Below, piece after piece: positions 23,401 to 44,292 of a stretch of 64,000 nt of DNA. A model generated the notes under the pieces. It worked only from the letters and a program-made list of their open reading frames with translations. It did not search any database and was not told the origin of the DNA. The DNA lies in the sequence record MK308676.1. The stretch is one strand, 5' to 3'. Made by a program: the position numbers and the translations under genes. Positions within the stretch are counted from its first letter, which is position 1. Every line of letters starts with the position of its first letter.

Positions 23401-24666
23401 TTAGACGCGTACTTGCCACTCGGGGCGAGATGCTTGGATTACCTTGAGTAGTCCAGTACAGTAACGGTACACTAGCTCGTTCTTGACCTTCAGAGGTTCA
23501 TTGAAACAACGAGCATAAGAAGGTACTTGACGGAAGATGCTTACGAGTTCTCTGTCTTGGGCATTATCAGGCACTCTGTCCTTTAACGCCTTAGCGGTGT
23601 TCTCGCAGCGACGTTTGAAGTCGCGGAACTTCTCGTAGTCTTGGCGCAGTAACAATGCTTGGTCTAAAGCTGCTTCAGCAACACGTGCGTATTCAGCACC
23701 CATATGCGTATCGATAGGGCGCATTGTGAACTCATTAATCTTCTTGCGGGTATTAATGGTTTCGAGTTTAACGCGAGGTGCCATGAAGCCTTCCTTAGGC
23801 ATGGACACAGTAAAGCGCTGCCAGCCAGGAAGTCTTTCAGAGGTATGCATCTGCATGTCAAGGTTATTTGTTTCCGTGATGTTACATGCTAGATAAGCAC
23901 ATAGAGCCTTGTAAAGCTCACCGCGGGCTAACTTGACCATATCCATCACAACCTTAGGTTCGGATGTTCTGGAGCCTTCTAGAGTCGTTATAACTTGGTC
24001 TAAGTTCACTCGGTAGTCACGAGGGTCTAAGCCAGAAGCAATAGTAGGCAGCTTGCGCAGAATCTGGTTAATTGATTCCTGTGGCTGCTTTAGATTTTCA
24101 TCTACCAGCCATAGTGCTGCCCCGTTTAGTTTGATGCGGGCATTAAGAAGCTCATTAGCGTTAGCTAGCTGAAACTTAGGTAGCATCTTCTTAAGTTGTC
24201 TTGCGTCCTGGAACGATTTACCCATAAAGGTAAAGCGACGCCCAAGGAAAGCTTTCAGTGTATCCAAGATAACCTGGGTAGCTTTCTTAAGGAAGCGGAA
24301 GACTTCTTGCCACGTGAAACTAATGCCTTCCATGGAAACTTCAAATGAATCCTCTTTACGAGTAAACAGGTCATCCATGGAAATGGTTAGACCGATACGG
24401 TTAAGGTTCGTATCGAGAACCGAATGTGTTAACTTAGCCACGTTTTCATCTACATGACTAAGTTTCTTCAGGTCGTCCAGTACTGAATAAATCATTACCG
24501 TAATGACGTCGACGTGTTCGAGTTCAGCCATGATGGCTTCATCTTCGTAATGTTCTCGAACTTCTTCATCAAAAGCCAAGCCATGAATCACCGCATCTAT
24601 TTCTCCGATAGAGACTGGAGTATCTAAGTTCTCACCCGTCGCTCGGGATAGCCAATCGGTTATCAT
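23401..24666 (-). CDS. Internal head protein (paralog family)
   Basis: 421 aa; acidic propeptide followed by EVSMEG and an amphipathic helix. Confidence 0.6.
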   Translation of the reverse strand: MITDWLSRATGENLDTPVSIGEIDAVIHGLAFDEEVREHYEDEAIMAELEHVDVITVMIYSVLDDLKKLSHVDENVAKLTHSVLDTNLNRIGLTISMDDLFTRKEDSFEVSMEGISFTWQEVFRFLKKATQVILDTLKAFLGRRFTFMGKSFQDARQLKKMLPKFQLANANELLNARIKLNGAALWLVDENLKQPQESINQILRKLPTIASGLDPRDYRVNLDQVITTLEGSRTSEPKVVMDMVKLARGELYKALCAYLACNITETNNLDMQMHTSERLPGWQRFTVSMPKEGFMAPRVKLETINTRKKINEFTMRPIDTHMGAEYARVAEAALDQALLLRQDYEKFRDFKRRCENTAKALKDRVPDNAQDRELVSIFRQVPSYARCFNEPLKVKNELVYRYCTGLLKVIQASRPEWQVRV

Positions 24667-24675
24667 GCGGTGTCC

Positions 24676-26004
24676 TTACTTTTCTAGGTTCTTCATTACT
24701 GCTTTAGATGCGCCTGCACAAGCAGCAGCATGTAGAGCTGACCACTTCGCTACGCCCTGATAAGCATCACGGATGGTCGTAGTGTACTGCTTAAGTTGCT
24801 CTAGGCGATTGAAGAACTCATCAAAAGGTGCACCGGCAAACTCAGCGTCTTTAAGGTTAGTCAACGCTTTGTTGATTGCCTTGATAAGATACTCACAGAA
24901 ATGCAAGACCGCTTTACCCGACTCGTTAGCCTGACGGTATGCTGCAATGCCTTCATAAGCGCGCTTAGCAAACGCCTTGGCGTCTCCGGCACTTACGTCG
25001 GTAATTGCTTCTGGTGCTTCCTTAGCACCCAACGCATCGCCGAAGTGAACGTTCAGTGCACGCTCTGAGTTCTCAGCAGGTACAGAGAAATAGATTGCTT
25101 TGCCGCCAGGTAGTTCTTCAGTAGAGACGTAAGACTTAGCACCTTTACCTAGACCTAACTTAGCACCGTCTTTCTCAGAGATAGACTTGGTCGCTGCGAA
25201 ACCACTAACGAACGCTTTGTTAAGTTGGTTGGTACTTTCCTTGATGCGGTTGTTTGTTTCAACCAGGTTAGTCTCATCGGCTTTCTCGATGTGTCCTTCC
25301 AGTTCACGAATCGCAGACAAGATAAGCTTACTTGCTTTAGAGTAGCGGTCTGTATAAGTGCGCATGCTACCGGTAAACAGTTTACCTTTAGCATATAAGT
25401 ATTCAACCTGAGGAACCTTAAGAGACTTCTCTTTAGGCTTACCTGTCGGATTGATACCATGTAGCTTGTCGATAGATTTCTCTAGACGAGCAACTTGGCT
25501 TAGGTGTTCATCGTAGAACTTAACACCAGCTGCAATAATTGCTTCAATTGCTTTAAGTAGCACCTTACCGACTTGTACGATAGTTTCTTTAACTGTCTTA
25601 CCTGCCGCTTCTACTTCTAGACGAACTGCTTCGACCTCATCGACGCCTTCCATTGAAGGTAGCTCGTAAGCCTGACGTATGCCTTCTAGGTTAACTGTGG
25701 CGTTGTCATAAAGCGTCATGGCGTATGCTGCGTCTTCACGCGTCATGCTATCGCCTTTAGCTTCGATGAATGCCTCGATGTGGCGAACCGATTCAGCTAA
25801 CGCTAAGTAGTCCGCTTGTACAGATTCATAAACAGATGCCGTAACTTCAGCTTCTGTGATTTCGATGTCGTGTAGTTCGATGTCGTCCACGTTGATTGCA
25901 GTCAATCCTGGTGTGACTTCATCTTTACTACCAACGACAGTCTTTGGCTGGCCAGCCGGAGCATTTACTGCACTAGCAATAATGCTTTTACGAAAGTCTT
26001 TCAT
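24676..26004 (-). CDS. Internal head protein (paralog of the 26131-27630 gene)
   Basis: 442 aa; ELPSMEG; collinear similarity to the neighbour (RKSIIAS, KFYDEH, ELPGG). Confidence 0.65.
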   Translation of the reverse strand: MKDFRKSIIASAVNAPAGQPKTVVGSKDEVTPGLTAINVDDIELHDIEITEAEVTASVYESVQADYLALAESVRHIEAFIEAKGDSMTREDAAYAMTLYDNATVNLEGIRQAYELPSMEGVDEVEAVRLEVEAAGKTVKETIVQVGKVLLKAIEAIIAAGVKFYDEHLSQVARLEKSIDKLHGINPTGKPKEKSLKVPQVEYLYAKGKLFTGSMRTYTDRYSKASKLILSAIRELEGHIEKADETNLVETNNRIKESTNQLNKAFVSGFAATKSISEKDGAKLGLGKGAKSYVSTEELPGGKAIYFSVPAENSERALNVHFGDALGAKEAPEAITDVSAGDAKAFAKRAYEGIAAYRQANESGKAVLHFCEYLIKAINKALTNLKDAEFAGAPFDEFFNRLEQLKQYTTTIRDAYQGVAKWSALHAAACAGASKAVMKNLEK

Positions 26005-26130: not shown

Positions 26131-27630
26131 TTACTTGTCGTCATCTTTTTTCTTTTTGTCATCGTCATCTTTACCTTTCTGGTCGTCGTCTTTGTCGTCG
26201 TCATCGCCGTCTTTACCAGGTTTCTTATCTTTGTCGTCGCCGTCTTTGTCGTCTTCTTCAGCTTTAGACTTACCTTTGCCTTTGCCTTTAGCGTCTACGT
26301 CGTCTTCTTCGTATTCGTCAGGCACACCATCGTCGTCTTTGTCATCTTCTTTGTCTTTTTCGCCTTTAGCTTTCTTAGCTTCAACGTCACCTAGGTTAGC
26401 TAGGATAGCGTGTGCAGCTACAGCGTTAGCTTCAGCAGACTGAGTGAACATGCGAGATAGTGATGGGTAAACAGACTTAAGAGTCGCAACAGTGTTAAGA
26501 CCAAGCTCTACAGCTTCCTTAACTTCAGCAACAGCTTCAGCTTCTACGCCTTCAAGTTCAGTAAGAGCTTCTACTTTCTCTAGGATGCTTGCGCCATTAG
26601 CGTGAACGTCGTTTAGAGAAACACCGGCAGCGATGATAGCTTTAGAGTTATCAACAGATGCAGTAGCGAATGTAACGTGAGCTTTAGCAGCGTCAGCAGT
26701 TACAGTTTCGATAGCAGCGCCTTCAACAGCTTCTTCAGCTTCAGCGAAAGTAACTGTTAGGTTACCTGCGTCTTCAGCGTCGTGAGCAGCTACAAGAGTG
26801 TAACCAGCTGGAAGTTCTTTGTCGTTAAGACCGTTAGCCGCTTCGATAACTTTAGCGATTTCAGCGCCGATTGCTTCAACAAGACCTTCTACGCCTTTCT
26901 CTTTAGCAGCTTCGATTGCAGCTTCGATTGCAGCCATAGCAGCAACAGAAGTTTCAGAACCAGCAACAAGTGCAGTAGCTAGACCAGCTAGTGCTTCAGT
27001 GCTACCTAGGTACTGAGTCATGCGAGGTTTAAGGGATGCTTCAACGGCTTCGCCTTTAACGTCTTTAGCGGCATCGATTTGACCGATAGCTTTAGCTAGG
27101 TCTGCAACGTTCTCGCCGTGCTCTGCGTAGAACTTAGTCGCTTCAGCAGTAGCCGCTTCAATAGTGCTTGCGATAACTGCTTTACAAGTAGCGATTGATT
27201 CGCCGTATGCGCCTTTAGCAGCTTGAGTCTGCATAAGAGCTGCGCCGTCCATATCGAAAGATTCCATTGAAGGAACTTCGATAGCGCTACGTAGAGTAGA
27301 TTCACGCTCGATAAGAGAAGCGTGGAACGCTAGAGGTAGTTCAGCTGCTTGTGCAGTACAGCCGCCTTCTGCTTCAGAGCGCTCTAGGTAAGAATGGATA
27401 GATTCCATTGATACTAGATGGTTTTCGAACTCACGTTGAGTATCGCGAGCGAAGATAACGTTGTACTCAGACTCTACAGGAGCAGAAGCGCGAGGTACAA
27501 ACAGGTTAGCCATAGCGTCTGCACCGAACAGTTGTTCTACTACAGTTGCTTGAGGCTGTGATTCAGGAGTAACGTCTGTTTTCTTGCCAGCGTCAATACT
27601 CGCTAGAATCGATTTACGTAAAGTGTTCAT
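26131..27630 (-). CDS. Abundant internal head protein with K/D-rich C-terminal tail
   Basis: ATG 27630 after AAGGA; two SME sites; Ala/Glu-rich; extreme codon bias. Confidence 0.65.
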   Translation of the reverse strand: MNTLRKSILASIDAGKKTDVTPESQPQATVVEQLFGADAMANLFVPRASAPVESEYNVIFARDTQREFENHLVSMESIHSYLERSEAEGGCTAQAAELPLAFHASLIERESTLRSAIEVPSMESFDMDGAALMQTQAAKGAYGESIATCKAVIASTIEAATAEATKFYAEHGENVADLAKAIGQIDAAKDVKGEAVEASLKPRMTQYLGSTEALAGLATALVAGSETSVAAMAAIEAAIEAAKEKGVEGLVEAIGAEIAKVIEAANGLNDKELPAGYTLVAAHDAEDAGNLTVTFAEAEEAVEGAAIETVTADAAKAHVTFATASVDNSKAIIAAGVSLNDVHANGASILEKVEALTELEGVEAEAVAEVKEAVELGLNTVATLKSVYPSLSRMFTQSAEANAVAAHAILANLGDVEAKKAKGEKDKEDDKDDDGVPDEYEEDDVDAKGKGKGKSKAEEDDKDGDDKDKKPGKDGDDDDKDDDQKGKDDDDKKKKDDDK

Positions 27631-29049: not shown

Positions 29050-30189
29050 TTACATTGAGTACTGTTCGCCTGCTTTGTAAGCACGCATGATTGCATTGAT
29101 GTCCATTGCACCAGGATTAGTTGCAGCTGGAGCGATTTGGTCGTACGAGTAATCACCGTACTCTTCAACGCCGCGCTGATAAATACGAACCAATTCCATT
29201 TCTTGGTCTACGACACAAAGAAGCATAGAACCAGTAAGCTCGAAGTACTTGTGACGGTGACGCTCTTTAGTAAGAGAACCGTTCATGATGCCTTCGATTT
29301 GACGAGCAGTGCGCTTAGTGATAACAATCATGGAAGACGCAATGTTCATCTGTTTCTTGCCGCTTAGGAAAGAACTTAACAGACCACGTTTCTGGCGAAT
29401 CTTCGCCATCTCGTATTGACCATCTTTATCATTGATAAGAAGGTCTAGGTCGTTCTCAATCATATCTACGCCAAGTGCGTAGTCAGCAAATGATTTAAAC
29501 TCACCCGCCATGTAGCGATGCCAACGGCCTTTGTAGCTGTTGTCGCGAGATAAGAACGCTTCAAGCGTCTTAAGCATAGTGCGAGTGTTTAGAGTGCGAG
29601 GATTAAGAGTACAAGTAACTTGAACCTTAACTTTATCTTCGGCATCTAGAGGAACTTCGATTACTTTACCTACCGCTAAGTTAGCTGGTTTAGAAAGGTC
29701 GATAGATTCCATCGATACTTCAATTAGCTCTTTGCGAGTTGGTTCTTGGAAGTCAGCCATGATATCAAGGTTGTCTTCGTCCCACGACTTACTAGCCGCA
29801 ACAGAACCGCCTAGGATGCCGTCAATGCAGAAATCGTCAGAACCCAACATTGCAACAGCAGTGTCGATTGTGTCATGCACATTGTAACGATTGTTTGAAG
29901 TTTGGTCTAAGATAGACATGACTTCGACGTTACCGATTTTAGTAACGCGTTGTACAACAGCTAGGTAATGGCCGATGTAAAGCGCTAAAAGAAGCTGGCT
30001 AATTGATTGAGAGACCTGAGGGTCCATACGAGAAATATCTTGCTCAAAAAGAGCCGGCGGAGACATGCGTGCGTACTGAGAGAACTCAGATAAAGAGCGA
30101 CGAGAGTCAGATGCGTTTAACGCCGCTTTAGCTCCCGCTCCCGCAATAGTCGTTGCTACATTTAGCAGTGTCTGTTCTGGAGTATTCAT
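29050..30189 (-). CDS. Head/inner-body protein (phiKZ gp89-like)
   Basis: 379 aa; EVSMES site; synteny. Confidence 0.55.
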   Translation of the reverse strand: MNTPEQTLLNVATTIAGAGAKAALNASDSRRSLSEFSQYARMSPPALFEQDISRMDPQVSQSISQLLLALYIGHYLAVVQRVTKIGNVEVMSILDQTSNNRYNVHDTIDTAVAMLGSDDFCIDGILGGSVAASKSWDEDNLDIMADFQEPTRKELIEVSMESIDLSKPANLAVGKVIEVPLDAEDKVKVQVTCTLNPRTLNTRTMLKTLEAFLSRDNSYKGRWHRYMAGEFKSFADYALGVDMIENDLDLLINDKDGQYEMAKIRQKRGLLSSFLSGKKQMNIASSMIVITKRTARQIEGIMNGSLTKERHRHKYFELTGSMLLCVVDQEMELVRIYQRGVEEYGDYSYDQIAPAATNPGAMDINAIMRAYKAGEQYSM

Positions 30190-30237: not shown

Positions 30238-31275
30238 ATGGCAACCAAGAAAATAGAAACCGTTCGTCGACAGTTAGGTTTCGGTTCACCGGAGTCGAAT
30301 GCTTACAATTTGTTCCACGGAATTAACCACCGAGGAACTGGGGATTTAACACCGACGAATCTTGATAACCACGGGTATGTGTTTTTCACGAAACCCGTTT
30401 TAAATTTAACAACGGACAATATCCGTAAAGTTAGTAAGCTATATTATTTAACTTCACAAGACTCTAATACTAACGGCACAGCTATCAAATGCTGCCTGAT
30501 GCCTAAACGTGAAGGTGACCGATACGAGCCAGGAAATACTCGTTCGGCTGTAATTGATGACAAGAGTGCTTTCATTCCGTTCCTAACAAACACACTCATT
30601 TCCTTCACAGGTTGGCCTGATGAGGTAACGGAATTTATCGACACGGACGAAGGTAACGCGAAAGAAATCCATGGCCATGTAGATGACCGCCCTGAGAACT
30701 TTGGCACCTTTGACTTGTCAGCTACGTTCGTTGCAAAAGAAGGCGACCCGCACATTGCCTTGTTCTCTGCTTGGCGTGAATATATGACCCGCGTAGCCGA
30801 GGGAACAACCATGACTCCTTTCCCTGAGATGATTGAATATGACGAAATCGATTACATGACTCGCCCTTATGTTCTCATCCTAGGGCCTGACCGTAAGCGC
30901 ATTCAAAAGATAGCAGCAGCGGGTGCGGCTGTTCCTAAAGCGGTCACGACAGGTGCTTCGTTTAACTACAACTCCGAAGCGGTATTCTCAGAAGAGAACC
31001 AACAGATAGATGTCCCATTTAAATGCTACGGAGCTATCTATAATGACCCGGCACTAATCGATGACTTTAACTGGACGGTGCAACAGTTTAACCCTGACAT
31101 GGAAGACTCACGCCGAGCAACATCGATGGTTAAGTTGACACCTCGCGAGAAGACGTTCTTTAACTTTTACGGATATCCGCGCATCGAAAAAGAAACGATG
31201 GAATTAGAATGGTGGCTCGATTTTGAAACTTACAATGCGCTACTATTACAACTAGAGGACGAAGGCGATGTCTAA
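30238..31275 (+). CDS. Baseplate/tail-tube-like structural protein (phiKZ gp88-like)
   Basis: 345 aa; divergent from the head operon; coupled to the wedge gene. Confidence 0.5.
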   Translation: MATKKIETVRRQLGFGSPESNAYNLFHGINHRGTGDLTPTNLDNHGYVFFTKPVLNLTTDNIRKVSKLYYLTSQDSNTNGTAIKCCLMPKREGDRYEPGNTRSAVIDDKSAFIPFLTNTLISFTGWPDEVTEFIDTDEGNAKEIHGHVDDRPENFGTFDLSATFVAKEGDPHIALFSAWREYMTRVAEGTTMTPFPEMIEYDEIDYMTRPYVLILGPDRKRIQKIAAAGAAVPKAVTTGASFNYNSEAVFSEENQQIDVPFKCYGAIYNDPALIDDFNWTVQQFNPDMEDSRRATSMVKLTPREKTFFNFYGYPRIEKETMELEWWLDFETYNALLLQLEDEGDV

Positions 31276-34129
31276 TTACAAGTACATTGATGACTTGGCT
31301 AACCATTTTGCTATTTCGCCCGCTACGACATTTACGCACGGTACGCGAATGCTGAACGATGCGATTGGCGGCGAGGTGGACATAGCTGACCCTAACAACC
31401 CTTTCATCGGCTTGTTGGAAATTAACGCTACACAAGTAGCTGCTCTCATGCAAAGAACGGACGTATCTACGCGTAAACGTTTTGCTAAGCTAGCACAAAC
31501 TCTAACCGACCTTTACCCGCACATGTCCGATGAAGACTTTGCAGGTATCTTCGGTTCGCCTAACTACCAACATGTTATCTCGGTAGGCTTAGGTAAGAAT
31601 CAAATCATTGCAAACGCAGTTGCTGATTCTGGAACAGGACTTCGACACATCCGTATTCCTCGCGATACAATCTTCCGTGCCGATGACCTGCCTTTTACTA
31701 TTCATCAACCTATCGACATTTCGGTGTATCCAAACGGAGAACTGAGAGCAGAATTTGATAGTTCGGTTGAGTCTCCCATTAACAGACGACAATCTAACAT
31801 CATAGAAACTAACATCGGTTTCTGGGAAGGCACAGAGATGTTTGTAATGAACATTCCTTGTGACCAGTTAGATATCCTTTCTGTGGCTGAACCGGTTACC
31901 GCTTCTACGAGCTGGGAGCAGGAAGTGGAGATTGCGGGTAACTTCTTCTATGCTCGAGGTTACTACAGTTCAGATAACATTAACTGGACTGAGATGCATA
32001 CCACGTTCGATACTAATAACTTCGACCCTATCAATCCGACGATGGTTGTCCGTGTAGAAGATGGCTTGGTACGCTGCTTTATTCCAGACGTGTTCATTGA
32101 AGAAGAGCGTGTGGGTGCTTATGCTCGAGTTGACGTCTATACAACTCAAGGACGTATTAACATTGACTTGTCTAATTCAGACTCAGCGGATTGGGAAGCG
32201 GAATGGAACGACTACAGTGGGCTTTCTGCTGGCTACGTGGCTCCTCTGCAAAACATTACATCTCGCATAATTTTCTCTACCCAGGTTTCTACCGGCGGTA
32301 GCGATGCGATGACGTTTGAAGAAATCAAAGACCGCGTTATCTATAACCGCTTTGGTAAGAACGGTGCTTATACAGGCGAAGAGTTACGTCAAGAACTACG
32401 TGAGTTGGGCTATGAGTCTTCTCTACGTAAGGACACTCTGACTGACCGTATCTATGTTGCGTCTAAACGCATCGACGATGCTGTGCTGTTAAGTGACACG
32501 GGACTAGCCACAGGTATCGGCGTAATCTCCGAACCTATTGCTTTCTACACTGGACGCACCGACCTAGCCTACGCTATGCGCAAGCATACAACACGTGCTA
32601 CGATTCTGCCTGCTGCTCTTTATAAAGAACAGTCCGGTGGCGTTAGTATTCTGAGTGAAGCCGAGAAAGACGCATTACATGCTCTGACTCCAAGTGCGCT
32701 TGTAGACGAGCTGAACCAAAACGATTACTTCTACACTCCTTTCTACACTGTGCTGGATTACACAAACACATTGTTTACATCTCGCGCTTATTGGTTAAGC
32801 AGTCCAGAAGTTGTTTATCGTAATGCTCTTGTCAACAACAATGCTTTAGGTTTCACAGCATCGACTACAGACGTTCAGGTCACACACGACACGGACAAGA
32901 TGTCTGTTAAAGTTACAGCGGCCAGACCTAAAGATGTAACTGGCATTCATCTACAGATGACGTTCAAAGGCGATGATGAAGAACTGTACTACGTAACTCA
33001 ACCAGCTACGTACTTGACAGACACAACAATGGAGTTCACGTTCGAGTTCGGAACAACATACGACATTGATTCTTCTCACAACTTTAACACAACGGCTAAA
33101 GATAAGAACCACAGCACTGTAGATGTCCGCATCAACTTGGAACAAGAGTTTGAGCTGTTCTTTATCGTAGAGACTCCTACTTCGACTGCTTCATCTTTCG
33201 ATGATAAGTTCTACTCCGGTGGCTACGGTACAACAGTAACTGCTATTGCGTATGAAAACCTTAAGGCTCGTTTCGGTCGTTACTTAGATGGCCTGTTCCT
33301 TTCTTCACGTACCCTTGTTCAATCGGCAACTTATGAACTTCACTTAGTAGATGTTCCTGAGACTTACCTAGAGAACGTGTACGAGACAGACGCGAATGGT
33401 TACAAGCCATATGTGGATAACGACGGCAACATCACCTTTAACTTGCTACATGCAATCGGTGACCCTAAGCTCGATGGCAATGGCGACCCAGTCTACCTAC
33501 ATCGCGCAGGCGACCCTAAGCTAAATGCTGCTACAGGCGACCCTATCATTGCGAACCCGGAAGACTATTCTCGCGAAGTTCGTCTACCTCTGTTAGATGC
33601 TCGTTTCCTATTAGCAACGGACGAGTCCATTGTAGCGTACAGAGAAGCTCTACCAGCTCGCATTTACGAGTACTTGAGCAAAGACATTGCTGAACTGAGA
33701 AAGAGCGTCCTAGAGCGCACAAACTTGTTCTACGAACCTCTAACTAACCAACAGTCTACTCTGGTTAAAGTAGCGGACGGAAGAGAACAGTCTATGCGTA
33801 CCGCTCTGGCATTCGCGATTGACTTCCAGCTAACTGTGCCGGCTTATGAGAATGACGCATTCCGTGCTGCTCTGATTAGTTCGGCTAAGACCACCCTGGC
33901 AACTATCCTTTCTTCTAACGAAATTGCGATGTCTGTCATTACGTCTCAGTTGAAAGCATTGGCGCCGGATAACATTCTTAATGTGACTGTGTCTAACCCA
34001 ATCGGTTCTACTGGCTATGCTTCTATTCAAGAAGCACTTTCTAGCTTTAGTATCGGTAAGACTATGCGTCTACAGCCAAACGGTCAAACTGTTATTGTGG
34101 ATGACGTTAGTGTTTCGTTCTCGAAATAG
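31268..34129 (+). CDS. Baseplate wedge protein (phiKZ gp87-like)
   Basis: 953 aa; STGGSDAMTFEEIK wedge-like motif; H-x-x-GDP repeats. Confidence 0.6.
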   Translation: MSNYKYIDDLANHFAISPATTFTHGTRMLNDAIGGEVDIADPNNPFIGLLEINATQVAALMQRTDVSTRKRFAKLAQTLTDLYPHMSDEDFAGIFGSPNYQHVISVGLGKNQIIANAVADSGTGLRHIRIPRDTIFRADDLPFTIHQPIDISVYPNGELRAEFDSSVESPINRRQSNIIETNIGFWEGTEMFVMNIPCDQLDILSVAEPVTASTSWEQEVEIAGNFFYARGYYSSDNINWTEMHTTFDTNNFDPINPTMVVRVEDGLVRCFIPDVFIEEERVGAYARVDVYTTQGRINIDLSNSDSADWEAEWNDYSGLSAGYVAPLQNITSRIIFSTQVSTGGSDAMTFEEIKDRVIYNRFGKNGAYTGEELRQELRELGYESSLRKDTLTDRIYVASKRIDDAVLLSDTGLATGIGVISEPIAFYTGRTDLAYAMRKHTTRATILPAALYKEQSGGVSILSEAEKDALHALTPSALVDELNQNDYFYTPFYTVLDYTNTLFTSRAYWLSSPEVVYRNALVNNNALGFTASTTDVQVTHDTDKMSVKVTAARPKDVTGIHLQMTFKGDDEELYYVTQPATYLTDTTMEFTFEFGTTYDIDSSHNFNTTAKDKNHSTVDVRINLEQEFELFFIVETPTSTASSFDDKFYSGGYGTTVTAIAYENLKARFGRYLDGLFLSSRTLVQSATYELHLVDVPETYLENVYETDANGYKPYVDNDGNITFNLLHAIGDPKLDGNGDPVYLHRAGDPKLNAATGDPIIANPEDYSREVRLPLLDARFLLATDESIVAYREALPARIYEYLSKDIAELRKSVLERTNLFYEPLTNQQSTLVKVADGREQSMRTALAFAIDFQLTVPAYENDAFRAALISSAKTTLATILSSNEIAMSVITSQLKALAPDNILNVTVSNPIGSTGYASIQEALSSFSIGKTMRLQPNGQTVIVDDVSVSFSK

Positions 34130-34139
34130 AACATAAAAG

Positions 34140-34168
34140 ACTCTCCTACTCCTTCGGGAGTAGGAGAG
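34140..34168. repeat. 29-bp TTCG hairpin identical to 39618-39646 (bidirectional terminator)
   Basis: actctcctactccttcgggagtaggagag lies between convergent genes. Confidence 0.85.
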
Positions 34169-34175
34169 AATCTTT

Positions 34176-35621
34176 TTATGCCGTCATGATAGCAGCAGCG
34201 AGTTCTTCAGATGAAGTACCTGCGATGATTTGGAAGCCAGTCTTACCTAAGGTCACAAACTTAAACCCTAGGGCAGCTACCGCATTTGTATCTACTAGCT
34301 CAGTAGTCTTAAGTGTGAAACGAATACGAGTAATGCAACCTTCCACATGCTCAATGTTATCGCGTCCTCCTACTGCCACTAAAATCTTCTTAGCAATAGA
34401 AGGGTTACTAAAATTTGAGGAACTACCTTTCTTATCAGCAGTTAAAGCCGACGTACAGTAGATGCGAGTCTCTTCTTGTACTGTAAGAACCTTACCTAGC
34501 ATCTCAGAGAAGTATGCTACGTATTTAGCCTGTTCAGACACAAGTAGACCGATAGCGGTGTTACAAGCTTGCAGTGTCTTCACTGCGTCACCTGCGATAC
34601 CTACTTGGTCTTCATCCATCTTCTGCGTGATAGAAGTAGTGCGTTTCAAGAAGCTAGAGTGACGCTTCTTATATTTAGAAACCGCATCTTCCATCTTGTC
34701 CATTGCTTTGTCCATGCTGTTACGAGCTTCCTGGATTTCTTTAGTATCTGGAAGTTTACGAATAGCGTCTAAATCAACGAACTTCTTGGTACGCTCTTCT
34801 TTCTGATGCTGGAGCCATGCTCTGCGCTGAGCATTAATCTGCATACAGAACGGAGAAGCTTGCTTAGGCCCTACTTTATAGAAGAACGGAGAAGGCGTCA
34901 TGAACGAGTTGCTGTCGATTGGGCGTGCGCCAGGAACAACAATGCTTAAAGAAGCAGTTGCTGAGTACATTGGCTCGAAAGCTTTCTCAAACTCTTTAAG
35001 TAGAGTATCTTTCAAACCACCTACAGACGAAGAGCTGTCAATGAATGATTTCAGTTCTTTGTATGCCATCTCGTTAAGTTTCTCGCCCACTTCTAAAGCA
35101 TGTACGACGTCGTTAACTGCTTGCTCTAGTACGTCAGGTCCTGAACTGTCCCAAGGTGCAAACGTAGGGTCATACTGAGCAATCTGGTCATCCACGTTAG
35201 GGAAAGCTTGTACGAAGCCATTACGGAACTCTTCAGAGTCTGCGTCTGCGTCTGGAGTCTTAACGCGAGAACCACGAAGTAGCTCTGCTAGCTTACGGCG
35301 AATAGCCTTGATAACTTTCAAGACAATCTCGTACACCTTCTCACCGCCAGCTACAGCTAAACTGAATGCTTTAGCGAAGATAGACTCCATCGCCACTTCT
35401 ACGTTCATTTGAGAATTAAACTCGGTAAAAGCTTTAACTGGATATTCGTCAGTGAAGTCTTTCATGCCGTACGCTGATTCCATAGCAACGACGTCGCCAC
35501 GGTTGATGCCTGAATAAGAAATCTTATCAGCCAACTTAAGAAGGGCCGATAACTCGACCGCTCCGTGTTGTTCATCTAGCGTTGCGGCTTCCAGCTCAAT
35601 ATCGATTTGCTCGAAGTCCAT
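34176..35621 (-). CDS. Internal head protein fused to a C-terminal PTS EIIB domain
   Basis: VAMES and EVAMES propeptide sites; C-terminus ILVAVGGRDNIEHVEGCITRIRFTLK...GFQIIAG matches EIIB of the Glc/GlcNAc family. Confidence 0.8.
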   Translation of the reverse strand: MDFEQIDIELEAATLDEQHGAVELSALLKLADKISYSGINRGDVVAMESAYGMKDFTDEYPVKAFTEFNSQMNVEVAMESIFAKAFSLAVAGGEKVYEIVLKVIKAIRRKLAELLRGSRVKTPDADADSEEFRNGFVQAFPNVDDQIAQYDPTFAPWDSSGPDVLEQAVNDVVHALEVGEKLNEMAYKELKSFIDSSSSVGGLKDTLLKEFEKAFEPMYSATASLSIVVPGARPIDSNSFMTPSPFFYKVGPKQASPFCMQINAQRRAWLQHQKEERTKKFVDLDAIRKLPDTKEIQEARNSMDKAMDKMEDAVSKYKKRHSSFLKRTTSITQKMDEDQVGIAGDAVKTLQACNTAIGLLVSEQAKYVAYFSEMLGKVLTVQEETRIYCTSALTADKKGSSSNFSNPSIAKKILVAVGGRDNIEHVEGCITRIRFTLKTTELVDTNAVAALGFKFVTLGKTGFQIIAGTSSEELAAAIMTA

Positions 35622-36427
35622 TAGTAATTCTCCTCTTCGGTCTCAGCGTAAGGGTTAACAATTACTTTCTCTTCCAGCATCGCTTCGATGATGTCAATCC
35701 AGTCCGGTTGCTCTGAGTAACCCATGATAATCTGCTTACAAACTTCATGGTGCTGAGGACCGATGTTCATGTTACCCAGGCAGGCTACTACGTAGTCGTA
35801 GTCACGGATATCGCCGAACGTAACACCGTCACGGTTAGTAATCATGAATTCTAACATGCGCGTCACCACGTTCTGGATGACGGCCTTCATGGCGTTTAAG
35901 CGATAAGCCGGAATATCGTCGTCATATTTCTCTTCCATAGCAGTGAAAATGGACTGTACTATGGTCTCTTTAGAACCTGCAATGTTGTTATTGCGGAAAG
36001 AAATACCTGAAAAGATTTCTTGATGTTGGCGAGTATGCTCCAAAAGGAAATCGAAAGCCATGTAATCGTCGCGTTCAGTCAGGTCTTCGACTTCTTCAAA
36101 CACTTGCCAGAAGCGGATGTGGTTACAGATTACATAGCCGGGGTCAGTCCAATAACGAGAACGGTCCTTGTAGATGCGACGTGCTAGTTCAACCACGAGG
36201 TCACAATCGCACATAATCGAACGGGCCATGCGTTTCGCTTCTGCCTTCGCTAGAGGGAACACGCTTTCCATCCAGATGTTATCGAACTGATAGTCGTACT
36301 CGTAATGGTAGATAGGTAGTGACTTTTGAATTTCGAAAGCGGCTAGCAACGTAGACACGCTCATGTTAGGTAATAGGACTGCCGAGTGTTTACGTGCAAT
36401 CTCATTCAATAAACGATATTTGTCCAT
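35621..36427 (-). CDS. Conserved hypothetical virion-associated protein
   Basis: 268 aa; stop overlaps the downstream start. Confidence 0.55.
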   Translation of the reverse strand: MDKYRLLNEIARKHSAVLLPNMSVSTLLAAFEIQKSLPIYHYEYDYQFDNIWMESVFPLAKAEAKRMARSIMCDCDLVVELARRIYKDRSRYWTDPGYVICNHIRFWQVFEEVEDLTERDDYMAFDFLLEHTRQHQEIFSGISFRNNNIAGSKETIVQSIFTAMEEKYDDDIPAYRLNAMKAVIQNVVTRMLEFMITNRDGVTFGDIRDYDYVVACLGNMNIGPQHHEVCKQIIMGYSEQPDWIDIIEAMLEEKVIVNPYAETEEENY

Positions 36428-37842: not shown

Positions 37843-39612
37843 TTGACAAAGGCGTACACTATGAGTAATGATTTACAAAGGTCTTGCATGTTTGTTCTTT
37901 ATGAAACAAGCAAAGATTCAAGAACCGAAGACTTACTAATCGTTAAAGAGCGATTACGTAATCCTGAAACTGGTGCTGAGAAACCGTCTCTGCGCCTAGT
38001 AAGAAACTACAAGCGACAGTTCGCTATCACTAAGAAAGCACTGCGTACACACAAGCAAAAGAAAGAGTGGGAGTTCAAAGAGAACTGTGACTTCTACGAA
38101 TGTACTTCTGCTGAACTACCTTTCCGTATTGCTAAGGCGCTAAACAAACACGGCCGTCACTATCGCTTAGGTGACCTATGTGAGTCTCCGTATGTTTACG
38201 GTGCGGACATCTCGTCATCTGTTCTTTACAAACATCACGCTGATGTAGCGAATGCTAAAAAGAATGGTGCGTGGAACCCAGACATGTCCATGGCGGTGAT
38301 GGACTTTGAGACCGACATGTTAAACGGTACTGAATATATTATCTCAGGCGCTGTTTCGTTCGGAGACAAAGCACTTATCGCAGTAACAGAAGAGTTCATT
38401 GAAGGCTGTACTACAGCTGAGCAGATTGAAGAAGAAGTAAATAAGCTTGCACGCCATTACATCAAGAAAGATATGGAAGAGCGCAACATCAAGCTTAAAG
38501 TAACTGTTTGTAAAAACGACTTTGAGGTGTGTGCTCGCCTCATGCAGTTCTGTCACGCATTGAAACCCGACTTCCTAGTATTCTGGAACGCCGGCTTCGA
38601 TATTAAGAAGATGATTGATTCTTGTAAGCGTCATCGCGTTGACCCTGCAAACATTTTCTGTGACCCTGCGATTCCACCGGAGTTCCGTAAGTTTAACTTC
38701 CGCGAGTCTAAGTCGAATAAAGTTATGGCGTCTGGTAAGAAGCTTAACTTCTCTGCGGCTGACCTATGGCACGTTATCGAATGTCCTGCTTCTTTCTACA
38801 TCATAGATGCTATGTCCGTATTTAAGATGTTGCGCGTAGTAGAAGGCATGCGTCGTTCTTACTCTCTGGATGCAATCCTAGAAGAAGAACTAGGCTTTAG
38901 AAAACTTGAGTACGAAGCAGAAGAAGCATCCGGTAACCATAACGTATCTTGGCACCGTGCTATGCAGCGCACACACAAACTTATTTACTTGGTATATAAC
39001 TTGTTTGACTGCGTGTCTGTAGAACTGCTCGATAAGAAGACTGGAGACTTGGCTAAGAAGATTGCTCTTTATGCCGATGGTTCAGAATTCTCTACGCTTA
39101 AGTCTAACCCTAAACGTTTGGCTAACGCGCTACACTTCTACCTAGATGACCAAGATAAAGTTATCTGTACTACTTCAACCAACATGACGGAAGAAGAGTT
39201 CGACCATCTTGTAATCGGTAAGAAAGACTGGATTGTTACATTGGCAAACGAGTTGACGCACAAACACGGTGCAGACATTTGGAAGCCAGAACATCGCGGT
39301 GACTTATTGAGCCGTATCGCAACACACGTTTACGATATCGATATCACCTCAGGCTATCCTTCTGGCCAGTGGGCACTGAATGTAAGTCGTGGTACGACAC
39401 TTGCAGAGATTTGTAAGATTGTAGGACAGCTAGAATCTGAACTACGTCGCTTTGCAGTTAACATGACATGTGTTCAAGCCAATGCTATTGACATGGGCCA
39501 TCAGATGCTAGGGCTACCTAACGTCGGTCAAGCACTAGCAGAATACGCTAAAGATAACGAGTTAGCAGCTAACGACCCTATCTTAGAAGAAGTAATTCGA
39601 AGAGCGGCATAA
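37843..39612 (+). CDS. Family B DNA polymerase, exonuclease plus partial palm half (phiKZ gp82-like)
   Basis: DFETD (ExoI), FWNAGFDI (ExoII), YNLFDC (ExoIII), YDIDITSGYPS (motif A); start may be ATG 37861. Confidence 0.85.
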   Translation: MTKAYTMSNDLQRSCMFVLYETSKDSRTEDLLIVKERLRNPETGAEKPSLRLVRNYKRQFAITKKALRTHKQKKEWEFKENCDFYECTSAELPFRIAKALNKHGRHYRLGDLCESPYVYGADISSSVLYKHHADVANAKKNGAWNPDMSMAVMDFETDMLNGTEYIISGAVSFGDKALIAVTEEFIEGCTTAEQIEEEVNKLARHYIKKDMEERNIKLKVTVCKNDFEVCARLMQFCHALKPDFLVFWNAGFDIKKMIDSCKRHRVDPANIFCDPAIPPEFRKFNFRESKSNKVMASGKKLNFSAADLWHVIECPASFYIIDAMSVFKMLRVVEGMRRSYSLDAILEEELGFRKLEYEAEEASGNHNVSWHRAMQRTHKLIYLVYNLFDCVSVELLDKKTGDLAKKIALYADGSEFSTLKSNPKRLANALHFYLDDQDKVICTTSTNMTEEEFDHLVIGKKDWIVTLANELTHKHGADIWKPEHRGDLLSRIATHVYDIDITSGYPSGQWALNVSRGTTLAEICKIVGQLESELRRFAVNMTCVQANAIDMGHQMLGLPNVGQALAEYAKDNELAANDPILEEVIRRAA

Positions 39613-39658: not shown

Positions 39659-40984
39659 TTAGTCTTTGCCTGCAATCATGATAACGTAAACGTTAAGCGC
39701 TTCGATAAGCGTACGCAGGAATCGCTCAGATGACTCTAAGTAAGAAACCGCGTTCATGTGAGACTTAGGAATAGAACGAATCATTTCCTGAAGAATCTGA
39801 ATGTCCTTATCGTTACGGCCATTGTGGTAACGTTTAAGGTCTTCAGCTGCATCACGTAGAATGTCACCGCCACTTGCACCGAACGTTTCTAAGTTATCCT
39901 TAGCACGACGGATTTCACCAGCGATTTGTTCACGCTTAGAATCTAGTTTAGCTGTGATAGCACGTAGCTCTTCTAGGTCACGGTAGCTTAGCTTAGGCAT
40001 GCCCTTAGGTAGACGAGAAGGTACGTTAGTATCTAGCTTGCCTTCAGTGTAAGAGAACATAAGCGTATGCATCTTGATAAGGCCAGAGCGCTCAGGGATA
40101 AATGTAGGGTATACGTCGCCCAGTAGCTTGCGCCCAGTCTTAAGATACTTACCGCGTAGACGTAGCTTAGCAATAGAAGCTAAGTCAGCCTGTTCGATTT
40201 CTTTGATGCCTTTGTTCAGAACCCAGTCGAAGTCTTGGATATCGCGCATAGTCATAACCGTGTTAATAACACGCTCATACGCAGTGCGGTCCATAGAAGA
40301 CGTTAGGTCGTTGAAGAACTGAAGCACAGATTCACATTGTGAAACTAGGTCACCGTACTTACCGTTTAGAACGAACTTAGAAAGAACGTTTACTTCACCA
40401 CGGTATGCTGGCGGGATAAGAATAGTCACGTCTTCGCTAATCATTGCTTTGTCTACTACTCGACCGTTAGGGTCAGTAAAGACATGAGCACCTGCACCGT
40501 CCAAGCTTTCTTTCTCTTCTGGTGTCATCTTAGCACCTGGCTCTAAGCCAAAGCGTTTGATTGTCTCTTCTGCTTCTTCTACGCGCTTCTGGAATGCAAC
40601 CAACTTGTCAGCTGCTTCTTTGTTCTTTTGGAACAATAGCTCAGATACCGCTGTAAAGAGCATACGAGCTCGACGGATAAGACCTTGGATAAGTTTAGCG
40701 ATTGCATCGTAAACACGCGCAGGGACGTCGCTAAGACCTTCCATGGCTACTTCTGTCTCAGCCACTACATCGAACTCACCAAATAGCTGGGAGATAGAAG
40801 TGTAACCAAGTTGAGTAGCGACTACTTTCAATGACATTTCTGCTTGAGCGCGAGTACGCTCATTAACGTCGTTTTTGCTAAACCACTCTAAGACCGTTTG
40901 AGTAGTTGCTAACGCAGCATCAACGTTCTTAATCTCGCGGTACAGCCGGGCTTGCTCAAGCTCCGCTGAAACAATGTTACTCAT
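39659..40984 (-). CDS. Internal head protein (paralog family)
   Basis: 441 aa; EVAMEG followed by an amphipathic helix as in the other paralogs. Confidence 0.6.
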   Translation of the reverse strand: MSNIVSAELEQARLYREIKNVDAALATTQTVLEWFSKNDVNERTRAQAEMSLKVVATQLGYTSISQLFGEFDVVAETEVAMEGLSDVPARVYDAIAKLIQGLIRRARMLFTAVSELLFQKNKEAADKLVAFQKRVEEAEETIKRFGLEPGAKMTPEEKESLDGAGAHVFTDPNGRVVDKAMISEDVTILIPPAYRGEVNVLSKFVLNGKYGDLVSQCESVLQFFNDLTSSMDRTAYERVINTVMTMRDIQDFDWVLNKGIKEIEQADLASIAKLRLRGKYLKTGRKLLGDVYPTFIPERSGLIKMHTLMFSYTEGKLDTNVPSRLPKGMPKLSYRDLEELRAITAKLDSKREQIAGEIRRAKDNLETFGASGGDILRDAAEDLKRYHNGRNDKDIQILQEMIRSIPKSHMNAVSYLESSERFLRTLIEALNVYVIMIAGKD

Positions 40985-43038: not shown

Positions 43039-44292
43039 TTAAACGATGTCTAGAACTGGGTCAAAGTCGACCGTCTTAGAAGCAGTACCGTGGAACGCGG
43101 CTAGAGAGATAGACATGAATACGTTACACATCTCTGCCATACGCGGACCTAGGCCGACGTTAGAGTTAACTTCTTTATCGCCCATACAACGAGCACAGTA
43201 GCCACGGTTCTTAGTCTTACATGCTGTTGGGTCACGTAAGATAATTTCAGTACCGATGAGTTTAGCAAACTCTTGTTCAGAGATAGGCTCATCTCGGCCA
43301 ACGATATAACGGCCCACTAGGTCACGCCCAGCTTCAACAAGCTCTGGCTTACCGACCATAGTACGACAATCGTCTTCTGCAATCTTCAAGTTCTGGAATA
43401 CACGGTTAGAGAACTTAGCTGCTTCACCGCCCAATGCCGTTGAGGCACCACGGTCATATGAACCGGAACGCAGGGAGTTGATAATAGCTGGTAAGTCTTC
43501 CGCAGCATAACCTTCGCCCAGCGAGCGAGGAATGTAATCCATTTTCGATGGGTCATCGAGCTTAGCCAGACCGCCCTGAACATGGAATAGTTTCTTACGG
43601 ACAACCGCGTAGGCTTTATCTTTCAAGAAGAACTTAGACGCATCGTCTCCGGCCATGTACTCACGGTCGGCTTCAGTAATAGCCTCATCAATCATCGCTA
43701 CAATTGCTGGGTCGTCGAGTTGGTCTTTGAACTTCTCTAAAAGCTCATCACGAATCTTCAATGCTTCAGGTGAAGCAGTTAGTGCCTTAGGCGTGTATGC
43801 TGAAACTGTAATCTCAGCAAATACCGTAATGTAGTTCATTGCCTGCATTACTTTAAGGTATTGTGGAACGCTTAGGGATTGGTCTAGCAGTGCTGCTGAG
43901 ACTCGTTTAGAGAGAAGCTTCTTGTTAATCTTACCAGCGACATATGGAAGAACTCCTTCCGAACCCCACTCGAAGATACAAGCATTAATGATAGCTTCAC
44001 CGTAGTTAGTTTCAACTGGTTCACGGACACAAGACAAGAAGTCTTCTGTAATAGTGAAGCGTTCTTTGATAGGAAAAAGGGGCTGACCTTCTTCCCAACC
44101 AGTAATCTCTTCCTGTCCACCTTCGATTTCTGGGTTGTGGTAAAACCATTTACCCTCACGAAAGCCCGGGACGTTAACGCCTACCGCCTTGTCGCGATTA
44201 GGTAAGGACAGAACACGGAATAGCCAAGCACGGTGACGGTAAAGGCCGTCACGCATAGCTAGCTTAAAATAATCAAGCTTATTAATCGCCAT
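43039..44292 (-). CDS. Virion RNA polymerase beta' subunit fragment (phiKZ gp80-like)
   Basis: 417 aa; SGSYDRGASTALGG, EDDC, LRDPTAC...YCARCMG Zn-binding beta' motifs. Confidence 0.8.
   Translation of the reverse strand: MAINKLDYFKLAMRDGLYRHRAWLFRVLSLPNRDKAVGVNVPGFREGKWFYHNPEIEGGQEEITGWEEGQPLFPIKERFTITEDFLSCVREPVETNYGEAIINACIFEWGSEGVLPYVAGKINKKLLSKRVSAALLDQSLSVPQYLKVMQAMNYITVFAEITVSAYTPKALTASPEALKIRDELLEKFKDQLDDPAIVAMIDEAITEADREYMAGDDASKFFLKDKAYAVVRKKLFHVQGGLAKLDDPSKMDYIPRSLGEGYAAEDLPAIINSLRSGSYDRGASTALGGEAAKFSNRVFQNLKIAEDDCRTMVGKPELVEAGRDLVGRYIVGRDEPISEQEFAKLIGTEIILRDPTACKTKNRGYCARCMGDKEVNSNVGLGPRMAEMCNVFMSISLAAFHGTASKTVDFDPVLDIV

Follow-up and report, generated by a model that had tools for sequence, protein, structure and literature searches.

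The stretch of DNA analysed here, 64,000 nucleotides of sequence record MK308676.1 (hereafter the window), comes from the Vibrio jumbo phage vB_VmeM-Yong XC31, which is phiKZ-like by its encoded head proteins and its phage RNA-polymerase beta subunit, and in whose record nearly all genes are annotated as 'hypothetical protein'. Our subject is a minus-strand open reading frame (ORF) of this window, whose product, QAX96017.1, is likewise recorded as a 'hypothetical protein' and is present unchanged in four Yong phage genomes; the 4-kb region searched is the same in three sister isolates. This ORF closes a head-gene operon, stands in the position occupied by the head proteins gp86 in phage phiKZ and gp47 in phage SPN3US, and ends in an EIIB domain of the bacterial sugar phosphotransferase system (PTS). 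The fusion is real, unusual and clean, and packaging of its product is likely. The following features were recognized at the locus (a slash marks a predicted or known cleavage position):

34176..35621, minus strand: the whole ORF, 481 aa, intact from ATG to stop; QAX96017.1, the gp86/gp47-slot head protein ending in an EIIB domain
35630..35635, minus strand: GAGGAG ribosome-binding site, read directly from the sequence
35385..35621, minus strand: predicted N-terminal propeptide (capsid-targeting and processing module), aa 1-79, conserved in all family members and aligning with the gp86 and gp47 propeptides
35478..35486, minus strand: predicted S80-protease site 1, A46-M47-E48/S49, aligning with the AVE of SPN3US gp47 (73-75 as annotated, AVE-79 in the paper, verified by mass spectrometry; PMC5694885)
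35385..35393, minus strand: predicted S80-protease site 2 (maturation), A77-M78-E79/S80, aligning with S114-Q115-E116 of phiKZ gp86 and ALE-111 of gp47 (PMC5694885, PMC11297242)
35274..35384, minus strand: mature N-terminus, aa 80-116, in which hydrophobic residues lead into an amphipathic helix, conserved in the family
34437..35273, minus strand: all-helical carrier body, aa 117-395, fast-evolving, whose aa 291-357 weakly resemble, below the threshold, the C-terminal end of phiKZ_IP
34398..34436, minus strand: Ser/Gly/Lys-rich linker, aa 396-408 (DKKGSSSNFSNPS), where the AlphaFold2 (AF2) confidence score pLDDT is below 50
34179..34397, minus strand: PTS EIIB domain of the glucose/N-acetylglucosamine (GlcNAc) family, aa 409-481, topology alpha-beta-beta-alpha-beta-beta-alpha
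34320..34337, minus strand: active-site loop C429-I-T-R432-I-R434, equivalent to C421, R424 and R426 of E. coli PtsG (PMC13482132), with the Cys429 codon at 34335-34337
34141..34168, no strand assigned: bidirectional intrinsic terminator with a 12-bp stem and 7 G-C pairs, between the convergent target gene and gp87 ortholog

The identity of the C-terminal domain is established by several concordant lines of evidence. The EIIB text begins at I409 (nucleotide 34397), shortly after the string DKKGSSSNFS (aa 396-405) of the linker. The Pfam profile PF00367 matches it with 46.3 bits, against a cut-off of 27 (E 2.8e-12, profile positions 1-34 of 34), and the EIIB regions of the NCBIfam NagE/PtsG models match residues ~400-478, the best hit being of the NagE type. 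A phmmer search against the PDB recovered E. coli IIB(Glc) (PtsG 400-467, E 2.4e-8) in a gap-free alignment of 67 residues with 36% identity, and the domain keeps each of the eight columns that are invariant in an alignment of 78 cellular EIIBs. An alignment-based AF2 model of the domain (pLDDT 84.5) displays the split alpha/beta sandwich (alpha1-beta1-beta2-alpha2-beta3-beta4-alpha3) typical of the fold, and its best Foldseek matches in the PDB are all IIB(Glc) structures at probability 1.0, namely 3bp8_C (TM-scores 0.79/0.88, root-mean-square deviation 1.0 A), 3bp3_A and 1o2f_B. In comparison with E. coli IIB(Glc) of PtsG (PDB 1IBA, 3BP3, 3BP8, 1O2F), the domain shares the fold and keeps the equivalents of Cys421, Arg424, Arg426 and Gln456, with Ser428 replaced by Thr, but it lacks the EIIC tether, lies outside a PTS operon and is fused to a phage capsid protein. 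No association with an EIIC permease or PTS gene was found; the partner is a head protein and the neighbors are orthologs of phiKZ gp84, gp85 and gp87. Hence, the C-terminus of the protein is an EIIB domain that is not a component of a PTS transporter; it is cleanly appended and has one catalytic Cys. Judging from its sequence, we lean slightly towards the domain being biochemically competent. The original prediction for this DNA, made from the letters alone, had read the sequence strings, the linker and the Cys codon at 34335-34337 correctly and had proposed an intact glucose/GlcNAc-type EIIB; this assignment holds, as both the profile search over the whole of PF00367 and the modelled structure return the same family with Cys429, Arg432 and Arg434 kept.

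The carrier of this domain bears the hallmarks of a processed head protein at its N-terminus. The two putative sites, VVAME/S (aa 44-49) and EVAME/S (aa 75-80), have to be seen against the fact that the bare S/A/G-x-E motif occurs in nine copies in the protein, so that the generic motif alone proves little. A more restricted form, [AS]ME[SG], is found 21 times across 300 ORFs of the genome as against 3.1 +/- 1.7 expected from per-protein shuffles (maximum 8 in 200), and the sharper motif of this phage is E-[V/I]-[S/A]-M-E/[S/G]. Among its carriers are the major capsid protein, where it marks the propeptide boundary, the S80 protease and the phiKZ_IP proteins, along with a virion structural protein and several unassigned head-block genes; the site in the S80 protease itself lies near the C-terminus, in keeping with the autocleavage that has been reported for SPN3US gp245. 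Both sites of the target conform to this phage-wide motif, as had been surmised for them. They are followed by a helix at aa 94-116 that is strongly amphipathic (hydrophobic moment, muH, 2.04) and not transmembrane (maximum Kyte-Doolittle, KD19, value 1.29), and no membrane anchor is predicted in the protein. Since there is no strong cleavage motif from aa 80 to the EIIB domain, the latter should remain on the 402-aa, 44-kDa mature protein.

A similar N-terminal organization, with a propeptide cut after Glu by the head protease, is seen in the phiKZ_IP proteins (PF12699) and in those internal proteins of T4 that bear a capsid-targeting sequence, and in the internal-protein paralogs of the Yong phage an amphipathic helix likewise comes after an xME/[SG] site. 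The original prediction had accordingly counted the protein among the internal head paralogs; only the propeptide-and-helix module is shared, and the bodies have no detectable homology. We rejected a paralogous relationship to phiKZ_IP, because PF12699 stays below its cut-off of 27 with 16 bits (aa 291-357 only) and hhalign against the phage's own internal proteins gives 1.3%; neither blastp nor phmmer detected a paralog of the target among the proteins of the window. phiKZ gp86 too weakly shares its N-terminal module with the internal-protein profile. A single-sequence AF2 model of the full-length protein was unusable (pLDDT 40).

Gene order provides a firmer handle on the identity of the carrier. 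The convergent gene immediately downstream (31268-34129) corresponds by orthology to phiKZ gp87 and SPN3US gp48, and the order gp89-gp90-gp91, gp88, gp87, X, gp85-slot, gp84 and gp83 is kept in phiKZ, SPN3US, the Vibrio phage pir03 and the Yong phage, the synteny spanning phiKZ gp83-gp91 and SPN3US gp44-gp52. The slot X is occupied by gp86 in phiKZ, by gp47 in SPN3US and by the EIIB fusion in the Yong phage; the latter is thus the positional counterpart of the former two. Its ATG (35619-35621) overlaps the stop codon of the upstream head gene (TAATG), which indicates that its translation is coupled within the operon running from 37783 to 34176, of which it is the final cistron. Its inference as a head-gene product in the original prediction is upheld by this arrangement.

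At the sequence level, the relationship to these counterparts is confined to the N-terminus. Comparison of the target family with phiKZ gp86 using hhalign gives 81.7% (E 1.1e-5) over only ~95 N-terminal residues, with A77-M78-E79 falling on S114-Q115-E116, the sole SQE within the N-terminal part of gp86, which is cited, under the name SQE-122, as a verified site of the protease gp175 (PMC5694885). gp86 (PF25617, a vertex-binding minor capsid protein) shares with the target the slot and orientation pattern between the gp87 and gp85/gp84 orthologs, the all-helical architecture and a probably homologous N-terminal module, but it has neither an EIIB nor any other cellular domain and its similarity to the target ends around residue 155. 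The hhalign comparison with SPN3US gp47 is insignificant (4.3%), yet the two sites of the target still fall on AVE-79 and ALE-111. gp47, an essential, processed head protein, resembles the target in its slot, in two propeptide sites ~30 residues apart and in being encoded by a fast-evolving gene, but its helix after the cleavage site is truly transmembrane (KD 2.58), unlike the amphipathic one of the target (KD 1.29), and it lacks EIIB. Its propeptide has been proposed as a capsid-targeting sequence (PMC5694885). A tblastn search linking gp47 to gp65 of phage Goslar found no connection, the gp47 homologs being confined to the SPN3US/Erwinia group.

An exhaustive HMMER search with residues 1-400 of the target against 1.84 billion representative proteins recovered seven remote carrier relatives of 376-397 aa, each of which terminates where the linker of the target begins; none of the seven has an EIIB domain. 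For three relatives the contigs were read, and each of the three occupies the same gene slot; on the closest contig the slot gene is 33% identical over 120 aa, as against 44-69% for the flanking genes. In every family member, the helix is preceded by two conserved x-[M/L]-E-[S/G] sites with a spacing of ~30 residues, and one member, P0009, matches PF25617 with 33.8 bits (cut-off 26) in its N-terminal part only. An eighth HMMER match, P0003, is a repeat protein that was set aside as unrelated. Word-index searches with the full target or its EIIB region returned the target itself only, and a scan of IMG/VR with the protein yielded no relative. A survey of homologs with and without the domain, which had been suggested as a check, therefore produced EIIB-less relatives in all seven cases and none detected with EIIB. 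In phage pir03, QNI21087.1 (L011 8856-10832, minus strand, 658 aa) looks like a fusion of the gp85-slot and gp86-slot genes: its residues 1-200 correspond to the product of 35621-36427 (blastp 3e-10) and its residues 301-450 to the gp86-slot protein (hhalign 83%), while its xME motifs appear degenerate.

The origin of the EIIB domain itself appears not to be recent. The closest cellular EIIBs are 31-47% identical to it and are scattered across many phyla, those of the Vibrionaceae being only 33-41% identical, and no terminal branch of the EIIB tree is longer than its own (2.75 versus a median of 0.29). We therefore rejected a recent capture from the host, given the lack of a close donor, the codon usage, which lies within 1 standard deviation (SD) of that of the phage genes, and the very long branch; the domain is either old in the phage lineage or fast-evolving. 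Retention of the invariant columns and of the surface Cys/Arg/Arg along so long a branch points to selection on the active-site face and not on the fold alone, which, as far as sequence conservation can tell, argues for phosphoryl transfer or partner binding via that face.

Among the viral predicted structures of BFVD, the fold was found at E <= 0.001 only in the target and in AUS02926.1 of the Vibrio jumbo phage 2.275.O, annotated as 'phosphotransferase system EIIB' (L002 7476-8228, plus strand, equivalent to MG592671.1 200473-201225; PF00367 55 bits). The latter resembles the target in a C-terminal EIIB with an intact CITRLR that is 41-42% identical to the target domain, but differs in being a 250-aa, membrane-tethered protein with an N-terminal multi-transmembrane region, a non-structural neighborhood and no protease motif. 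Its neighbors include a cyclic-nucleotide-binding protein. The EIIBs of the Yong phage and 2.275.O do not group in the tree, where 74 columns and long branches leave a common origin weakly constrained. A tblastn match to EIIB (33% identity, E 8e-6) was also observed at 84-371 of PQ520057.1, a 3585-bp unannotated record of the Enterococcus phage IME_EF3, which may be a bacterial PTS fragment and not phage DNA. In the literature searched, no paper links a phage virion protein with EIIB or describes a virion-borne PTS module, in agreement with the novelty that had been claimed, and the sole paper found discussing Yong phages makes no mention of the EIIB fusion. What is new is therefore the EIIB cargo; the carrier is of a known kind, namely the protease-processed gp86/gp47-slot head proteins with variable C-termini.

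Taken together, we tentatively favor, at somewhat less than even confidence, the interpretation that the target is a slot head protein with an EIIB domain as C-terminal cargo, which would be delivered to the host as a low-copy sensor or docking module for the host PTS. The 79-residue propeptide would target the precursor into the prohead, and cuts after E48 and E79 would leave a mature protein that keeps EIIB in the capsid. Were it to behave like phiKZ gp86, ~55-60 copies would be situated at the inner face of the vertices (PMC11297242), and gp47 has been described as being of low abundance (PMC5694885). The protein would then leave the capsid with the DNA, and the EIIB surface would have been kept as it still meets the host PTS, this being the least secure step. 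Acting in low copy, it could engage in phosphorylation-state-dependent binding or accept phosphate from EIIA(Glc)~P, so its role would be that of a module reading the sugar and energy state of the host at the start of infection and not that of a bulk phosphate sink. That AUS02926.1, the only other viral protein with the fold, also keeps CITRLR is counted for the kept active-site face. The components of this proposal are of unequal strength: the target is probably a packaged, processed head protein; its delivery to the host cytoplasm is conceivable, though we hold it to be somewhat less probable than not; and that ~55-60 active EIIB copies are delivered with the DNA, to read or perturb the PTS state via EIIA(Glc)~P or an Mlc-type partner before phage gene expression, is doubtful.

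Several observations weigh against this proposal. Cryo-EM places phiKZ gp86 on the inner capsid vertex (PMC11297242), and Goslar gp65 is found in the same vertex complex as gp86, where a second folded domain of gp65, absent from gp86, occupies the place of phiKZ gp28 (10.64898/2026.04.21.720040). As this extra domain is purely structural in position, EIIB could be a similar add-on. Judged by these homologs, host delivery of the target is contradicted by the best structural evidence, and a folded 8-kDa EIIB would need to be unfolded to pass the tail. The lack of EIIB in all seven relatives implies that the domain is dispensable for the core function of the slot, and with the fusion restricted to four near-identical genomes of a single phage lineage purifying selection is not measurable. 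Further, the affiliation with gp86 is itself limited: homology is detectable in the N-terminal ~95 residues alone, the body is not detectably gp86-like, and the target has no match to PF25617 at E <= 1, where phiKZ gp86 scores 516 bits.

The evidence for ejection comes from the counterparts as well. phiKZ gp86 was earlier expected to be ejected, and an amber mutant of SPN3US gp47 lacking only the C-terminal ~90 residues forms normal-looking, fully stocked virions that are non-infectious (PMC5694885), from which its authors deduced an ejection or host-takeover role (PMC5694885, PMC7411985). The gp47 genetics only suggests ejection, and the evidence from homologs is contradictory (PMC5694885 versus PMC11297242). 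The injection into the host that the original prediction inferred is thus not supported, with gp86 and gp65 seen on the inner capsid wall and ejection of gp47 deduced only from the amber mutant.

These findings bear directly on the foremost alternative, under which EIIB is a capsid-resident accessory domain that contacts neighboring minor capsid proteins or, via the phosphate-binding Cys/Arg/Arg face, the packaged DNA, and never meets the PTS. It draws on the resolved positions of gp86 and gp65 in the vertex-binding complex and on the target being the positional and probable N-terminal homolog of gp86; moreover, the slot tolerates a wide range of protein lengths (376-658 aa). It is, nevertheless, rather unlikely in our estimate, as truncation of the gp47 C-terminus kills infectivity with no visible capsid defect (PMC5694885) and no likeness to gp86 is detectable in the body of the target. 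A structural role also gives no reason for the retention of C429, R432 and R434, or of the GGxxNI...CITRxR signature, on the longest branch of the tree.

A second possibility, which was the one originally advanced, is that the virion injects a soluble EIIB decoy that drains EIIA~P stoichiometrically, with effects on cyclic AMP (cAMP) and inducer exclusion, or titrates the repressor Mlc before phage expression; we consider it very unlikely. The intact domain with its phospho-acceptor Cys is in its favor, but EIIA(Glc) is abundant, being present in the order of 10^4 molecules per cell, so that ~55-60 copies would be the wrong dose. With only a few dozen copies and, in the absence of EIIC and sugar, no turnover of EIIB~P, a bulk drain of EIIA~P is implausible and this part of the original prediction is weak. 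Of the Mlc-contacting residues, R424, R426, S428 and Q456 map to R432, R434, T436 and Q464 of the target (PMC13482132), but they are family-wide invariants and hence do not constitute evidence for Mlc binding. IIB binds Mlc peripherally without competing with DNA, and it is membrane localization and not binding that inactivates Mlc (PMC13482132, citing Tanaka 2004); a soluble IIB from a protein without a predicted membrane anchor is therefore not expected to inactivate it, and the proposed Mlc titration is disfavored on this account. The membrane-tethered AUS02926.1 suits the Mlc idea better than the target. Like any delivered function, the decoy also presupposes an ejection that is itself unproven.

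A marginally less probable scenario is docking at entry, whereby the released EIIB would bind the cytoplasmic face of a host EIIC of the PtsG/NagE type, or EIIA, at the inner membrane and help to position the genome or the early compartment. Phages are known to exploit inner-membrane PTS components for DNA entry, as lambda and 434 do with ManYZ (PMC6832061); SPN3US gp47 from the same slot has the predicted transmembrane helix (KD 2.58) and a proposed interaction with the host membrane (PMC5694885); and a GlcNAc/glucose-type EIIB fits the dominant transporters of chitin-derived sugars in Vibrio. However, the scenario is wholly inferential: EIIB and EIIC naturally touch only weakly and for a short time, the scenario, too, presupposes ejection of the protein, and such myoviruses are not known to require PTS proteins. 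Least probable of all is a role in the producing cell, in which EIIA~P would phosphorylate the late precursor and tie assembly or incorporation to host energy, or the domain would be a neutral recombination passenger, for although synthesis of the precursor takes place in the cytoplasm alongside an active PTS, and the domain is missing from all seven detected relatives, PTS control of capsid assembly has no known precedent, and codon usage within 1 SD of the phage genes with no close donor speaks against recent neutral capture.

Beyond the target, the following features of the phage were identified:

13118-15241: phiKZ-type major capsid protein, PF25620, 592 bits
24676-26004: phiKZ_IP protein, 141 bits, with a paralog at 26131-27630
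43039-44292: phage RNA-polymerase beta subunit
124531-125337: Peptidase_S80 head-maturation protease, 203 bits
98-2476, 13118-15241, 23401-24666, 24676-26004, 26131-27630, 29050-30189 and 39659-40984: genes of the window bearing the cleavage motif

The motif E-[V/I]-[S/A]-M-E/[S/G] marks ~14 predicted S80 substrates, which represent the predicted processed head proteome of the Yong phage. An outlier among them is a DEAD/ResIII helicase (237310-239526) with the site near its C-terminus. The 441-aa protein encoded by 39659-40984 (minus strand) has EVAME/G at aa 76-81 ahead of an amphipathic helix that closely resembles the target's, and is probably another processed head protein, of no known family. 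Two further slots in the head-gene block are of note. The gp85-slot protein (35621-36427, minus strand, 268 aa) is nearly twice the size of phiKZ gp85 (149 aa) and has no match to the Pfam family PhiKZ_gp85, though it does match its counterparts in a metagenomic contig (L012) and in pir03. The gp83-slot gene (37888-39612, plus strand) is far better conserved than its neighbors: in comparison with the same metagenomic contig it reaches 69% identity and they reach 23-44%. The program-made ORF list also gives an alternative start for it, a TTG further upstream at 37843. Its pir03 ortholog carries the annotation 'DNA polymerase' despite its location among the head genes, and the product of phiKZ gp83 is recorded as a structural protein of the head.

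In Vibrio and the enterics, the phosphorylation state of the PTS serves as the master indicator of carbon and energy status and controls cAMP, inducer exclusion, chitin and GlcNAc use and biofilm formation. If the EIIB domain is retained in the capsid, it would clearly exemplify the exaptation of a signalling fold as a capsid component. If it is delivered, a virion would for the first time be seen to carry a module of a bacterial sugar-signalling phosphorelay into the host, which would represent a new class of host manipulation or sensing that precedes phage gene expression. Delivery would also give a testable function to the fast-evolving gp86/gp47 slot, whose products are disputed as ejected or vertex-binding proteins, and this hypervariable slot of the chimallivirus-like phages would then be a platform for host-specific effector cargo.

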